DNA of 64,000 nt from positions 186,001 through 250,000 of IMG/VR virus record IMGVR_UViG_3300032675_000001; one strand, given 5' to 3'. The translations under genes and the position numbers were made by a program. How positions within the stretch are numbered: position 1 is the stretch's first letter; every line of letters starts with the position of its first letter. Shown piece after piece: positions 48,616 to 56,787 of this stretch. The notes below the pieces were generated by a model. That model was not told the DNA's origin. It saw nothing but the letters and a program-made list of their open reading frames with translations, and ran no database searches.

Positions 48616-48703
48616 AAAAATAGTTCTTGACATTATCTGAACTACACGCTATTGTGAGTTCATAGAGAGCGACGAAAGAAACTCTCTGTTCTTTGACATT
48701 GTT
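48616..48703 (+). promoter_or_regulatory. rrn-like promoter with boxB hairpin and boxA
   Basis: AAAATAGTTCTTGACA...GCTATTGT; AGAGAG/CTCTCT hairpin; GTTCTTTGACATTGTT. Confidence 0.7.
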
Positions 48704-48936
48704 GAATGAATAAAATCTATCGGGTGGTCAAGCTAAGGGCGTGAGCGTGGCACTGGCAAGACCTGAAATAGAGTAGCGGACCCTCCCTAGCACCGTGACT
48801 CTTCCCTACGATAGACTGTTTAGATGAACCCTGTTGACGTAATTGTGCAGTGGTAGCTCGTCCGTTAATTCGGTGGTCCTAGCGCAGGTTCGAATCCTGT
48901 ACGAAGGGTACGACTTTATATAAAGAAAGGAAGATC

Positions 48937-49176
48937 ATGTTCTATGAAAAGTGTGCCGAGTTACTCGGTGCGACATATGAATGTGAATCTTTCCCTTATC
49001 GCTATCGTACTCGCTGGAACAATCGTTCTCCGGGCAACGGTAGGTTTGAGGGCTTTGGAATAATCAGAAAGTTTGGTGATAACTATCAAGTGGCGTTAAC
49101 TCGTCCGATATCGCATCATGCTATCTATCATTCCGAAGAAGAAGTATTCGCATTCCTGAGAAGTTTATCTCAATGA
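48937..49176 (+). CDS. Hypothetical protein
   Basis: AAGGA RBS; TRWNNR.PGNGR motif. Confidence 0.6.
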   Translation: MFYEKCAELLGATYECESFPYRYRTRWNNRSPGNGRFEGFGIIRKFGDNYQVALTRPISHHAIYHSEEEVFAFLRSLSQ

Positions 49177-49267
49177 TAGACTTATTAGATGAACACTGTT
49201 AGTCTGATAAACTCATAGAGCTAGAAGGGCGACAGCAAGAGAAACAGTGTTCTTCTAATAAGTTTAT

Positions 49268-49343
49268 GCTTCTGTAGCTCAGTTGGTAGAGCACCAGACT
49301 GAAAATCTGGGTGTCGCCGGTTCAATCCCGGCTGGAAGCACCA
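49268..49343 (+). tRNA. trnF: tRNA-Phe(GAA)
   Basis: CCAGA-CTGAAAA-TCTGG. Confidence 0.93.
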
Positions 49344-49365
49344 GAATTAAAACCAAATAGTTAAT

Positions 49366-49450
49366 GCGGGTATGGTGTAATTGGTAGCCACGGCAGACTT
49401 AGAATCTGTTGCTTTATCGCGTGGGGGTTCAAGTCCCTCTACCCGCACCA
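49366..49450 (+). tRNA. trnL: tRNA-Leu(TAG)
   Basis: GCAGA-CTTAGAA-TCTGT. Confidence 0.92.
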
Positions 49451-49656
49451 AGTTTTGCTCAAGTGTGATTAGCTTGAGAACAGAGTAGACGATTCATGTC
49501 GGGCAAGGCAACTCTTATCAAGTTGTTAGTTGTGGCACAGGATGGGGACGGTCTCTATAAAAACGTGTATCCAGCTATTCATGTTGAGTGAGAAATACTC
49601 GGAAGATCGCTACGGTGCCCGATCACTTGACTAAATACTCTCAACAGGAGAGTAAA

Positions 49657-49830
49657 ATGGACCCAGAACTGCAAGCACAGATTAAAGATTATCTAGCAAA
49701 CAATCTGTCAATGACATTTGGTATTAGTCAAGACCCATATGGTCTATGGCAAGATCAGATAACGATCAACTTATGCCTTGAAGGTGAAGTGATCAATACT
49801 ATTGTCATGTATGACTGGAGTAATAACTAA
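49657..49830 (+). CDS. Small hypothetical protein
   Basis: TAAATA and AGGAG upstream. Confidence 0.55.
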   Translation: MDPELQAQIKDYLANNLSMTFGISQDPYGLWQDQITINLCLEGEVINTIVMYDWSNN

Positions 49831-49836
49831 GTAAAT

Positions 49837-49922
49837 GCCCCGATGGTGGAATCGGTAGACGCGGGAGACTCAAAATCTCTTGCCCAAAAGGCGTGGGGGT
49901 TCAAGTCCCTCTCGGGGCACCA
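49837..49922 (+). tRNA. trnL: tRNA-Leu(CAA)
   Basis: GGAGA-CTCAAAA-TCTCT. Confidence 0.92.
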
Positions 49923-49923
49923 T

Positions 49924-50400
49924 TTAACTTTTTGGACCAGTAAATTTGATATAGCGTTTTTCGCCAGTTTCAAAGTTTACAAGCCTGTCAAGTAGGTGAC
50001 CGCCTTCTTCGTAGTCACCATTTGGGTCTTCTCTTCGAAGATACACTATAGGTGTGTAAAATCCATCTTCTGTAGGTAAAAAGTATGCTGGACCAAAATT
50101 AAATTCTTGACGTATATGGGCAGAATGAGCACTTTCTTGTCCTGTCTTAGATCGTGTCACTCCATGTCTAATAACTTTGTAAATTCCGCCTTTTGGTAAA
50201 CGAATTCTACTGCCAATCGGAAGATCATCAAACAGACCTTGCTCATTCATTGCTGATAATGCAGATTGAGAACCACTTACACCATTCTGGACTTTATTCA
50301 TAAGTTCTTTATGGAATCCACGTAGTTCTTTGTCTTTTTTTGCAGAATCAAAATCAACAACATTTGATTCTATTATGTTAATAAGGTCTCTCATATTCAT
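49924..50400 (-). CDS. Hypothetical protein, possible internal virion protein
   Basis: N-terminal MRDLINIIES. Confidence 0.65.
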   Translation of the reverse strand: MNMRDLINIIESNVVDFDSAKKDKELRGFHKELMNKVQNGVSGSQSALSAMNEQGLFDDLPIGSRIRLPKGGIYKVIRHGVTRSKTGQESAHSAHIRQEFNFGPAYFLPTEDGFYTPIVYLRREDPNGDYEEGGHLLDRLVNFETGEKRYIKFTGPKS

Positions 50401-50420
50401 TTGATGATTCCGTTTATAGT

Positions 50421-50999
50421 TTATAGGCCAGCTTCCGCTTTAAGAGCGTTGAGTTTCTGGTCATAACTCTTAGCCCAAGAATAAACGGCCTTCTTTAGGC
50501 GGGCAAAAATGCTTCCAACGGCTTCGTTTATGGGCTTAACTGTCAAGGCTGGTGCTTTCTGTGTTTTTGTGACCATTTCTTCTTGACTCTTGATGCCCTC
50601 TAACACTTTGATAAGTTCAGGTGTAAGATGCTTTTCAAGTTCTTCAAGAATGTTCTTATACTTTGGAGCCTCGGTAACTTTAGGGTCTTTGGTAAGATTG
50701 AAAATGAAACTGACTGTTTCAATGACACGAGTACGAGCAGCATCTGCAGCATCAAAAAGATCAGCAACGTCTTCTCTAGTGTGTTGCTTGATTTCATCTT
50801 TTAGTTGCTTCATTTCTTCTGTGAGTTCTTCCATTCGCTGTAGCTTCTGAGCAAGCTTAGTGTATGTTTGGCTCTTATAGCTGCGAAGTCTTGCGATGAC
50901 TTTGGTCCCCTTGGGATCATCTTCGTATTCAATATCCGGGTTGTCTGTAATTCTGCCTTCGCAGATCATCATGAGTTTTTTAAAGCTGTCAATATCCAT
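50421..50999 (-). CDS. Hypothetical coiled-coil protein, possible internal virion protein
   Basis: Minus-strand TAAATA near 51028; FKKLMMICEG N-terminus. Confidence 0.65.
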   Translation of the reverse strand: MDIDSFKKLMMICEGRITDNPDIEYEDDPKGTKVIARLRSYKSQTYTKLAQKLQRMEELTEEMKQLKDEIKQHTREDVADLFDAADAARTRVIETVSFIFNLTKDPKVTEAPKYKNILEELEKHLTPELIKVLEGIKSQEEMVTKTQKAPALTVKPINEAVGSIFARLKKAVYSWAKSYDQKLNALKAEAGL

Positions 51000-55486: not shown

Positions 55487-55530
55487 CATTAGCATCAAAC
55501 CTGCTATACTGAGGGCATGTTAAAGAGAAT

Positions 55531-55608
55531 GGTGCCATAGCTCAGTTGGAGTAGAGCACGAGCCTTCTAAGCTTGGGGTCGTAGGTTCGAGTCCTACTGG
55601 CATCGCCA
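55531..55608 (+). tRNA. trnR: tRNA-Arg(TCT)
   Basis: CGAGC-CTTCTAA-GCTTG. Confidence 0.92.
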
Positions 55609-55652
55609 CTCTTTTTGTTTGATAGAGATTTTACGATATAAATAGTTTTAAT

Positions 55653-55727
55653 GGGGCCTTAGTGCTAACGGGAACACGGTAGCTTTGCAAGCTTCAATTA
55701 AGGGTTCGATTCCCTTAGGCTCCACCA
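55653..55727 (+). tRNA. trnA: tRNA-Ala(TGC)
   Basis: G3:U70; loop TTTGCAA. Confidence 0.88.
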
Positions 55728-55828
55728 AGTTTAAGAAATCTCCCTTGAGGGGATCAGGTTGTGGATGTCTTAGGTGGCATCGGATATGCGGCAGGACACG
55801 AGAAGCCAGTATATCATGAAGTTTATAA

Positions 55829-55905
55829 CGGGGATTAGCGCAGTCTGGTAGCGCACCTGCTTTGGGAGCAGGGGGTCGTAGGTTCGAATCCTACATTCCC
55901 GACCA
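55829..55905 (+). tRNA. trnP: tRNA-Pro(TGG), second copy
   Basis: CCTGC-TTTGGGA-GCAGG. Confidence 0.93.
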
Positions 55906-55913
55906 GTTTACAT

Positions 55914-55988
55914 GCCGGGTTAGCTCAGTGGTAGAGCACCGCCTTTACACGGCGATTGCCGGGGGTTCAAATCCCTCACCCGGTACCA
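55914..55988 (+). tRNA. trnV: tRNA-Val(TAC)
   Basis: CGCC-TTTACAC-GGCG. Confidence 0.9.
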
Positions 55989-56066
55989 TATTCATGAAAA
56001 ACTACAGGTTATATATCTGTAGTTTTTCTTTTTGTGATAAATATATAACTATTCTTTACGGAAGAA

Positions 56067-56480
56067 TTGGAAGAAAGGTTTTATGAGTTGGCACAAGTTA
56101 ATAAACATATCCTCGTTACAGGATACCTAGCAGACGCCCCTGAGGCAGAATACGTTACTTTTCTAGCAGACTGGTTCAAACGCTTAGTTGAAGCAGTTGA
56201 CATGAAGGTCCTTATTGAACCTATTTGTGTTTGGTGCGATGATGAAGGTAACGAAGGCGTAACGGGGATGGTAGGAATAACTACTAGCCATTCATCAATT
56301 CATTTTTGGTCTGGTGAGCCATCGTATTACAAGTTTGATCTGTATTCGTGCAAGGATTTCTCACTTGACGCAGTAGCAGGTATGCTCAAGGAACTTGGCA
56401 CACATAAATTCACCTACACCGTAGTTGATCGCACAGATGATGAACATCCTGTGATTGATAGTGGTGTTGTCACTTTCTAA
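56067..56480 (+). CDS. speD: S-adenosylmethionine decarboxylase proenzyme-like protein (start uncertain, possibly TTG 56088)
   Basis: GVTG...ITTSHSSIHFW...DLYSCKDF. Confidence 0.75.
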   Translation: MEERFYELAQVNKHILVTGYLADAPEAEYVTFLADWFKRLVEAVDMKVLIEPICVWCDDEGNEGVTGMVGITTSHSSIHFWSGEPSYYKFDLYSCKDFSLDAVAGMLKELGTHKFTYTVVDRTDDEHPVIDSGVVTF

Positions 56481-56618
56481 ATAACGAGGTTGGAGTTCCC
56501 GTGACTCCGTTGGTACCTGAGGACAAAGAGGAAAATAACACTAGTTTTCTCTCCTGCTGGGCCAGAATAAAATTGCGGGCGGATACGGAGAGAGTTGTGT
56601 TAACTCTCTCCCCGACAT

Positions 56619-56693
56619 GCAGGTGTGATGTCAACGGTAGCATGACGGTCTCCAAAACCGTTCGTCTGGGTTCGAATCCTAGCACCTGTGCCA
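56619..56693 (+). tRNA. trnW: tRNA-Trp(CCA)
   Basis: ACGGT-CTCCAAA-ACCGT. Confidence 0.92.
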
Positions 56694-56702
56694 AACTTTC
56701 TG

Positions 56703-56787
56703 AAAATAGTTCTTGACAATACCCCAACAATGTCATATAACGATAAGACAGAGAGCGTAAAACGCTCTCTAGTTCTTTGACATTGTT
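56703..56787 (+). promoter_or_regulatory. Second rrn-like promoter with boxB hairpin and boxA
   Basis: AAAATAGTTCTTGACA...CATATAA; AGAGAGCGT/ACGCTCTCT; GTTCTTTGACATTGTT. Confidence 0.7.

Follow-up and report, generated by a model that had tools for sequence, protein, structure and literature searches.

Positions 186,001 through 250,000 of the virus record IMGVR_UViG_3300032675_000001 in IMG/VR (herein the window, 64,000 nucleotides [nt] in full) contain two places at which a sigma70-type promoter is followed by a short hairpin and then by the identical 16-mer GTTCTTTGACATTGTT, in front of transfer RNA (tRNA) genes and other non-coding RNAs. Together with a third leader beyond the window end, these are probably antitermination sites of the kind found in the leaders of ribosomal RNA (rRNA) operons (rrn), heading non-coding RNA operons that the host polymerase would transcribe early, in a jumbo phage from lake water with an alphaproteobacterial host. 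The initial annotation had proposed such a pairing of a hairpin with a boxA element. We retain it because the 16-mer is identical to the rrn boxA of Alphaproteobacteria, the element occupies a predicted leader position, the hairpin precedes boxA as in rrn leaders, the arrangement recurs with covarying stems in the tRNA and GOLLD RNA islands of other phages, and a second promoter at this position fails when tested. The likeness suggests that the phage borrows the rRNA antitermination machinery of its host.

Three leaders share a promoter, a hairpin, and boxA

The pattern first noticed at two sites is borne out: a shared promoter flank, a hairpin, and the identical 16-mer lie at 48617 through 48703 and at 56703 through 56787, the first site starting 1 nt later than had been annotated (48617, not 48616). 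The flank plus −35 hexamer of site 1 (48617 through 48632) reads AAAATAGTTCTTGACA; apart from this promoter flank, the stem, and the 16-mer, the two leaders are dissimilar. The exact 16-mer is confined to these two sites in the whole 360,683-base pair (bp) genome, where by an arithmetic estimate ∼2 × 10^−4 further exact copies of a given 16-mer are expected by chance. With up to three mismatches allowed, the promoter flank has 8 matches against 1.2 expected, a count reached in 0 of 100 shuffles. The third leader, 2.6 kilobases (kb) past the window end, has a variant of the 16-mer (Table 1).

The hairpin is upstream of boxA at all three sites (3 of 3), and boxA starts 30 to 33 nt past the predicted −10 element in each; the corresponding distance in other phages is 7 to 33 nt. 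Hairpin 1 begins ∼8 nt past the −10 element, that is, at or near the predicted 5′ end of the RNA. The first 32 nt of the three boxA leaders fold with −13.5, −10.7, and −5.5 kcal/mol, compared with a mean of −2.4 kcal/mol for 36 other sigma70-like leaders, 4 of which reach −5.5 kcal/mol or lower. A hairpin followed by the U-rich start of the 16-mer (GUUCUUUG) could also be an intrinsic terminator that limits transcription, and a loose terminator scan does pick up the site-2 hairpin with its tail AGTTCTTTGA, though not that of site 1. We regard such an attenuator as very unlikely: the U-tract is short and interrupted, conservation runs on through GACATTGTT, the site-1 stem is weak (−5.5 kcal/mol), one class of leaders in other phages (class II, below) lacks the hairpin, and the 16-mer is also present in host rrn leaders, which require read-through.

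The second TTGACA of each leader is a perfect −35 hexamer and might thus belong to a tandem promoter, the outcome that the initial annotation had named as fatal to its proposal. That scenario fails. A TAnnnT motif 16 to 18 nt downstream is present at 0 of 3 sites and in 2 of 41 unique phage leaders, compared with a background of 6.5%; transcription from such a promoter at site 2 would start within tRNA-Leu; the variant in front of GOLLD has TTGAAA; and the same 16-mer is found within transcribed host rrn leaders. A tandem promoter is therefore highly improbable.

boxA marks long non-coding RNA units

The RNA behind boxA 1 comprises a helix-closed element (48716 through 48816) and a tRNA-like piece (about 48845 through 48915) that is not called by ARAGORN. 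Next come an open reading frame (ORF) of 79 amino acids (aa) with a good ribosome-binding site (48937 through 49176), whose product is 92% identical in four related phage contigs (L031, L242, L274, and L308), and a long hairpin (49179 through 49263). The earlier description of the transcripts as long, untranslated tRNA and non-coding RNA thus holds as far as the units are non-coding RNA units, but not in the sense that they are wholly untranslated, as unit 1 includes this conserved ORF. A 26-nt direct repeat, GATAGACTnnTTAGATGAACnCTGTT, lies at 48810 through 48835 and 49174 through 49200, on both sides of the tRNA-like piece and the ORF. Window positions 48810 through 48897 are 78% like L093:8883 through 8969, a stretch just past the GOLLD boxA of phage L093.

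At site 2, tRNA-Leu(taa) starts at 56802, 14 nt downstream of boxA. It is followed by a structured RNA of ∼170 nt (56895 through 57065) that is closed by a 26-bp helix, has a T-arm-like hairpin of the GGTTC.AATCC type, and is conserved in six phage copies; 13 of its 52 predicted pairs show compensatory changes. It has no Rfam match, and a Ro/TROVE protein, sought in the phage as its partner, was not found. We suggest a possible new phage RNA of tRNA-like or Y-RNA-like character. The third leader heads a GOLLD RNA (Rfam RF02032; 205 bits vs. a gathering score of 150; L006:3168 through 3631) with an embedded tRNA-Lys(ctt). Here boxA is 519 nt upstream of the conserved 3′ domain of GOLLD, about where its variable 5′ domain should begin.

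In all, boxA follows 3 of the 5 promoters of non-coding RNA units and none of 30-odd other sigma70-like promoters, which head ORFs. It marks promoters of non-coding RNAs with long non-tRNA stretches and no messenger RNA (mRNA) promoters. This placement bears on a decoy role, in which abundant boxA leader RNAs would titrate NusB-S10, starve host rrn of antitermination, and shut down ribosome synthesis. Perfect copies of the host rrn boxA behind strong promoters with A-rich upstream flanks, several per genome and present in many phages, would suit a decoy, which is moreover compatible with antitermination. Yet each copy lies in cis, in front of a long non-coding RNA unit, and never on a short dedicated transcript, and a phage with more than 40 tRNA genes needs functioning host ribosomes; we consider a decoy quite improbable.

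Table 1. Positions of leader elements, transcription units, and related RNAs. Positions are those of the window unless marked otherwise
Feature	Position	Strand	Description
Promoter P1	48617..48655	+	A-rich flank AAAATAGTTC; −35 TTGACA 48627-48632; 17-nt spacer; −10 TATTGT 48650-48655
Hairpin 1 (boxB-like)	48664..48687	+	AGAGAG/CTCTCT; free energy −5.5 kcal/mol; 0-nt gap to boxA
boxA 1	48688..48703	+	GTTCTTTGACATTGTT; same as boxA of alphaproteobacterial rrn leaders
Transcription unit 1	48704..49922	+	Non-coding RNA of ∼230 nt, 79-aa ORF, long hairpin, tRNA-Phe, tRNA-Leu(tag), tRNA-Leu(caa)
Comparison unit without boxA	55483..56028	+	TTGACA-16-TATACT; four packed tRNAs (Arg, Ala, Pro, Val); strong intrinsic terminator 55996-56028
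Promoter P2	56703..56741	+	16-nt flank of site 1 repeated (56703-56718); −35 TTGACA 56713-56718; 17-nt spacer; −10 TATAAC 56736-56741
Hairpin 2 (boxB-like)	56750..56770	+	AGAGAGCG/CGCTCTCT; 5-nt loop; free energy −13.5 kcal/mol; 1-nt gap to boxA
boxA 2	56772..56787	+	GTTCTTTGACATTGTT
Transcription unit 2	56802..57502	+	tRNA-Leu(taa), ∼170-nt structured RNA (56895-57065), three tRNA-Glu, tRNA-Gln
Site 3	genome 252,591-252,666		2.6 kb past window end; TTGACA-17-TATAAT, hairpin CAAGAC/GTCTTG, then variant GCTCTTTGAAATCGTT
GOLLD RNA	L006:2680-3631 = genome 252,680-253,631		2.6-3.6 kb past window end; headed by the third promoter-hairpin-boxA
Permuted (two-piece) Alphaproteobacteria-type transfer-messenger RNA	L319:6963-7307 = genome about 78,913-79,307	−	Tag ANDNSTMDIALAA

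The 16-mer is identical to alphaproteobacterial rrn boxA

Comparison with the rrn leaders of candidate hosts bears out the rrn-like character ascribed to the element: all 16 of its 16 positions are identical to boxA of alphaproteobacterial rrn leaders. We scanned one genome per species, 185,579 species in all, for the exact 16-mer and obtained at least 120 loci. Among the 120 matches listed, 46 are rrn leaders; the 5′ end of 16S follows 142 to 342 nt downstream in 20 of these, and the remainder have the same leader continuation (GAAGGGA...TGGGCG) and are truncated at contig ends, as collapsed rrn repeats usually are. The named organisms among the listed rrn-leader matches are without exception Alphaproteobacteria (30 of 30; Sphingomonadales, Rhodospirillales, Sneathiellales, and Hyphomicrobiales), and include Novosphingobium, Sphingobium, Sphingomonas, Erythrobacter, Qipengyuania, Sphingorhabdus, Thalassospira, Stellaceae, Sneathiellales, Microvirga, and Jiella. 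The other listed matches are scattered chance or coding occurrences in many phyla (68 of 120) or too short for classing (6). Three alphaproteobacterial carrier genomes have 1, 4, and 4 copies of the 16-mer; the reversed-pattern control gives 0.

The functional consensus for gammaproteobacterial boxA is GYTCTTTAANA (PMC5725501), from which the phage cores GTTCTTTGACA and GCTCTTTGAAA deviate only at position 8, with A replaced by G. Alphaproteobacterial rrn leaders have the same G, as does AUGAUCUUUGAAA, the NusB-binding boxA of B. subtilis (PMC13753749). A further motif common to phage and host leaders, TTAGATGA(A), has too few copies for a reading, and some of these are helix arms.

Phages do acquire host DNA, and 68 of the 120 genome matches listed for the 16-mer are unrelated chance or coding occurrences, so that the phage copies might be fortuitous or a functionless leftover from recombination with a host rrn operon. 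The comparative data exclude this, and we give it hardly any weight: sharing with host leaders is limited to the 16 nt, the position relative to promoters is constant in at least three unrelated types of phage leader, the stems covary, and each roseophage genome has one copy, exactly at the head of its RNA island.

The leader recurs in other phages with covarying stems

The exact 16-mer is present in more than 113 stretches in IMG/VR; with CTTGAC required 35 to 65 nt upstream, 101 stretches remain, representing 62 unique strings, 28 of them with a recognizable −10 element. The leaders fall into two classes. In class I, to which the relatives of this phage belong, a 5′ hairpin ends 0 to 2 nt before boxA; in class II boxA starts 7 to 17 nt past the −10 element and there is no hairpin. 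Fourteen unique class I leaders have a stem of at least 6 bp ending 0 to 2 nt before boxA, and each of stem positions 1 through 6 is occupied by three to six canonical pair types (examples are AGAGAGCG, AGTCAA, CATCAAG, GCCGGGC, and CAAGAC). The GOLLD-leader stem of this phage, CAAGAC, is CAAGTC in L093, with a compensating change in the opposite strand. For the class II phages, comparison with cultured relatives gave matches at the level of tRNAs only.

In GOLLD-bearing phage loci, boxA is 514 to 1879 nt upstream of the GOLLD 3′ domain in 8 of 9, and a promoter precedes boxA in every context printed. What follows phage boxA elements is either tRNAs, as near as 15 to 21 nt, or GOLLD. In L070, L104, and L046 a boxA without a promoter comes after a tRNA 3′ end, reminiscent of the second boxA in rrn spacers. 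A block reading TGTGTCGGG follows boxA in a phage group other than that of this phage. In one group of uncultured phages with manA RNA and GOLLD, also different from that of this phage (L016, L022, L041, L061, L069, L074, L113, and others; contigs of up to 171 kb), boxA is 15 to 17 nt past the −10 element. A boxC-like TGTGTCGGGAGGG stands ∼10 nt past boxA in this manA/GOLLD group (L016, L022, and others), whose leader resembles a fuller mimic of an rrn leader.

In two cultured phages, Roseobacter phage DSS3P8, which infects Ruegeria pomeroyi, and Phaeobacter phage MD18, a single island combines tRNAs with GOLLD and an alpha-type transfer-messenger RNA (tmRNA). The pattern GYTCTTTGAMA has exactly one match in each of these genomes (∼148 kb), GCTCTTTGACAATTTG, at the head of the tRNA/GOLLD/tmRNA island. 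Genome G437 has the same GCTCTTTGACAATTTG at two contig ends, with the rrn leader signature downstream of it. G437 belongs to a family shared with a Paracoccaceae metagenome-assembled genome; other genomes of that family have differing 3′ flanks after TCTTTGACA. A search with the 13-mer GCTCTTTGACAAT in a sample of the Rhodobacteraceae family returned mostly chance coding matches, and the leader-signature pattern was more effective. Because the phage 16-mers recur in rrn leaders of the matching clades, boxA appears to track the host clade: it matches the variant of the putative host clade in two independent cases, this phage and the roseophages. Two direct copies of CGGTTTCATACCCG stand just upstream of the DSS3P8 boxA (L320:940 through 1025), where there is no obvious sigma70-type promoter; these repeats may serve as a promoter specific to the phage or as the binding site of a factor.

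These comparisons also bear on the possibility that the leader has another role, as a 5′ stabilizing stem-loop with an RNase E or RNase III processing site, or as a site for another protein, with the rrn likeness reflecting shared processing. The hairpin does sit at the predicted 5′ end, as 5′ stabilizers do, and rrn leaders are processing substrates as well. This explanation is nonetheless unlikely, given that the conserved block is a single-stranded 11 to 16 nt that fits the consensus recognized by NusB/E, that it is identical to the host rrn boxA in two independent pairs of phage and host clade, and that class II leaders retain boxA without the hairpin.

Comparison with known antitermination systems

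With the bacterial rrn leader antiterminator (boxB-boxA-boxC; NusA, NusB, NusE/S10, NusG, SuhB, and S4) the phage leaders share the hairpin-then-boxA order just behind a strong sigma70 promoter, the long untranslated structured RNA downstream, and, for alphaproteobacterial leaders, the 16-nt boxA identity. They differ in being viral, in their cargo of tRNA arrays, GOLLD, other non-coding RNAs, and some small ORFs instead of rRNA, and, in this phage, in having neither a recognizable boxC nor a leader-trailer helix; antitermination, established for rrn, is presumed for the phage. In E. coli rrn, boxB is dispensable and boxC is not needed for antitermination. The rrn operons of B. subtilis have a small 5′ hairpin with boxA immediately after it (PMC13753749), and a small 5′ hairpin adjoining boxA is likewise a feature of the phage leaders.

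The nut sites of phage lambda are similar in that a phage carries host-type boxA RNA for NusB/NusE, whose recruitment is presumed here. The order of elements is reversed: lambda has boxA then boxB, and this phage has the hairpin then boxA at all sites. In lambda, boxB is bound by the phage N protein, the targets are mRNA operons with terminators, and boxA is the shortened CGCUCUUA, whereas the boxA of this phage is of the full rrn type. An N-like factor is not evident in the phage, although no search was aimed at such a protein. We considered a lambda-type nut site and rejected it on the hairpin-boxA order at all sites and on the stem sequences, which vary freely between phages and thereby speak against a sequence-specific partner of the N type.

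The put RNA of phage HK022 acts in cis, just behind a phage promoter, and renders host polymerase termination-resistant. It and other factor-independent phage antiterminator RNAs share with the present leaders their placement right after a phage promoter; put differs in having two stems, in acting on polymerase itself with no Nus factors involved, and in lacking boxA. The boxA of CRISPR arrays shields long untranslated repetitive RNA from Rho. Like that element and the boxA upstream of suhB (PMC5725501; cited in PMC13753749), the phage boxA stands in the leader of a non-rRNA transcript; the suhB and CRISPR examples are chromosomal and were shown in Gammaproteobacteria. GOLLD RNA, which has relatives in cultured roseobacter and Caulobacter phages, enters the comparison as the cargo of the third boxA promoter and not as the signal.

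A model for phage antitermination and the points against it

In the model that we propose, host RNA polymerase with sigma70 would initiate at the strong TTGACA/TATAAT-type promoter, and the first 20 to 25 nt of the RNA would form the short boxB-like hairpin. The following 11 to 16 nt, read as a perfect copy of the host rrn boxA, would be bound as nascent RNA by host NusB-S10 (NusE), which with NusG, NusA, and probably SuhB and S4 would assemble an rrn-type antitermination complex. The complex would resist Rho on untranslated RNA, speed elongation, and aid the folding of long structured RNAs; those served would be GOLLD, the ∼170-nt tRNA-like RNA, and the tRNA arrays with long spacers. NusB-NusE has a site for double-stranded RNA contiguous with its boxA site (PMC3177189), which provides a rationale for a stem that abuts boxA. 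More tentatively, and with the odds against it, the Nus complex may be a co-transcriptional folding machine for GOLLD and the tRNA-like RNAs, so that GOLLD biogenesis would depend on Nus factors as that of rRNA does, with NusB-S10 possibly drawn from host rrn operons and a host-matched boxA serving as a predictor of the host from sequence alone.

A number of observations weigh against antitermination of the rrn type. boxA is missing behind two promoters of non-coding RNA units (55483 and genome 250,606), and no conserved G/U-rich block corresponding to boxC lies downstream of boxA in this phage. At site 2, an RNase P cut 14 nt past boxA would free the leader from the nascent chain, which puts the persistence of the complex in question. 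No boxA core is present in the islands or genomes of Caulobacter phage Karma, Sinorhizobium phage Phosso, and Vibrio phage D69; the boxA device is optional among phages with tRNA/GOLLD islands. Of 41 host rrn leaders, 24 have a hairpin that ends no more than 3 nt from boxA, compared with a shuffle mean of 22.8, which is no excess. Because host leaders show no boxA-adjacent hairpin above the shuffled level, "boxB" in this phage is best taken as an analogous stem and at most a putative homologue of the boxB of host leaders. The sequencing runs that contain the phage sequence are DNA only (lake and freshwater metagenomes), with no RNA run among them. Finally, very divergent phage polymerases might escape Pfam. 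In favor of the model, six-frame Pfam searches of the phage found no NusB, S10, NusG, RNA polymerase beta, or sigma70 region 2. Because the promoters are of the sigma70 type and no RNA polymerase or sigma gene was detected in the phage, host RNA polymerase should transcribe these units.

Host and genome

Three lines point to an alphaproteobacterial host: boxA; the alpha-type tmRNA, which scores 65.8 bits on the alpha_tmRNA model and 85.5 bits on the permuted tmRNA model; and GOLLD, whose closest relatives in cultured phages occur in Caulobacter (phiCbK group) and roseobacter phages. The proposal that the boxA variant can identify the host therefore stands at the level of class, where the alpha-type tmRNA agrees, and falls short at that of genus. 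Because the 16-mer is common to several alphaproteobacterial orders, boxA would resolve the host to class only, and we make no call of order or genus. Among the matches listed, the exact 16-mer turns up most often in Sphingomonadales, and the habitat is lake water. In 401 genomes of the class the exact 16-mer has only 6 matches; many of these genomes are probably without assembled rrn operons.

The record has direct terminal repeats and 41% G+C, and the phage sequence is present in at least 17 metagenome samples from lake water or freshwater. The large terminase (TerL) shares ∼50% identity with its counterparts in PA5oct-like Pseudomonas jumbo phages and in Sinorhizobium phage Phosso; the protein search with TerL leads only to the broad Rak2/PA5oct/Phosso group of jumbo phages and does not indicate the host, and megablast against cultured phages gives no match to the phage DNA. 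The genome encodes 43 tRNA genes, 42 of them on the + strand in a single island (genome 230,335 through 255,641), and also the permuted tmRNA. The tRNA outside the main island, tRNA(cta) at genome 216,380, lies 14 kb off it (window 30380 through 30454); it has the anticodon CTA, is called tRNA-Pyl by ARAGORN, scores 39.8 bits on the tRNA model, and may be an amber suppressor. tRNA-Ile(tat) (window 51295 through 51387) has the unusual length of 93 nt and may contain an insertion or intron. Protein genes within the tRNA island include those for a B12-binding radical SAM enzyme, a Coq4-family protein, and an HNH endonuclease (window 46758 through 48356, 52291 through 52986, and 53707 through 54270, respectively). 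Elsewhere, a single ORF of 6,326 aa spans genome 124,084 through 143,064 on the − strand.

Significance

In a full-text literature search, boxA was not found together with the phage-tRNA terms used or, among the papers listed, with jumbo, giant, or huge phages, and boxA and GOLLD co-occurred only in unrelated plant papers, none of them about GOLLD RNA. The published boxA survey left out non-coding RNAs (PMC5725501), and in a term search of the GOLLD cryo-EM paper antitermination is not mentioned and the sole "promoter" is that of T7, for synthesis (PMC12286853). No report of phage use of a host rrn-type boxA for tRNA/GOLLD operons was found in the literature searched.

Known settings of boxA-driven Nus antitermination are rRNA operons, lambdoid phages, suhB, and CRISPR arrays; if the present reading is true, viral non-coding RNA operons would join them, and this would account for how long untranslated phage transcripts escape Rho. 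For GOLLD, the boxA leader would offer a concrete handle on expression and folding, and experiments are feasible in that the cultured phages DSS3P8 and MD18 carry the element. The boxA variant may also serve as a cheap marker of host class for uncultured phages, being of the Sphingomonadales/Rhodospirillales type in this phage, where its value is upheld by the agreement of the alpha-type tmRNA, and of the Rhodobacteraceae type in roseophages.

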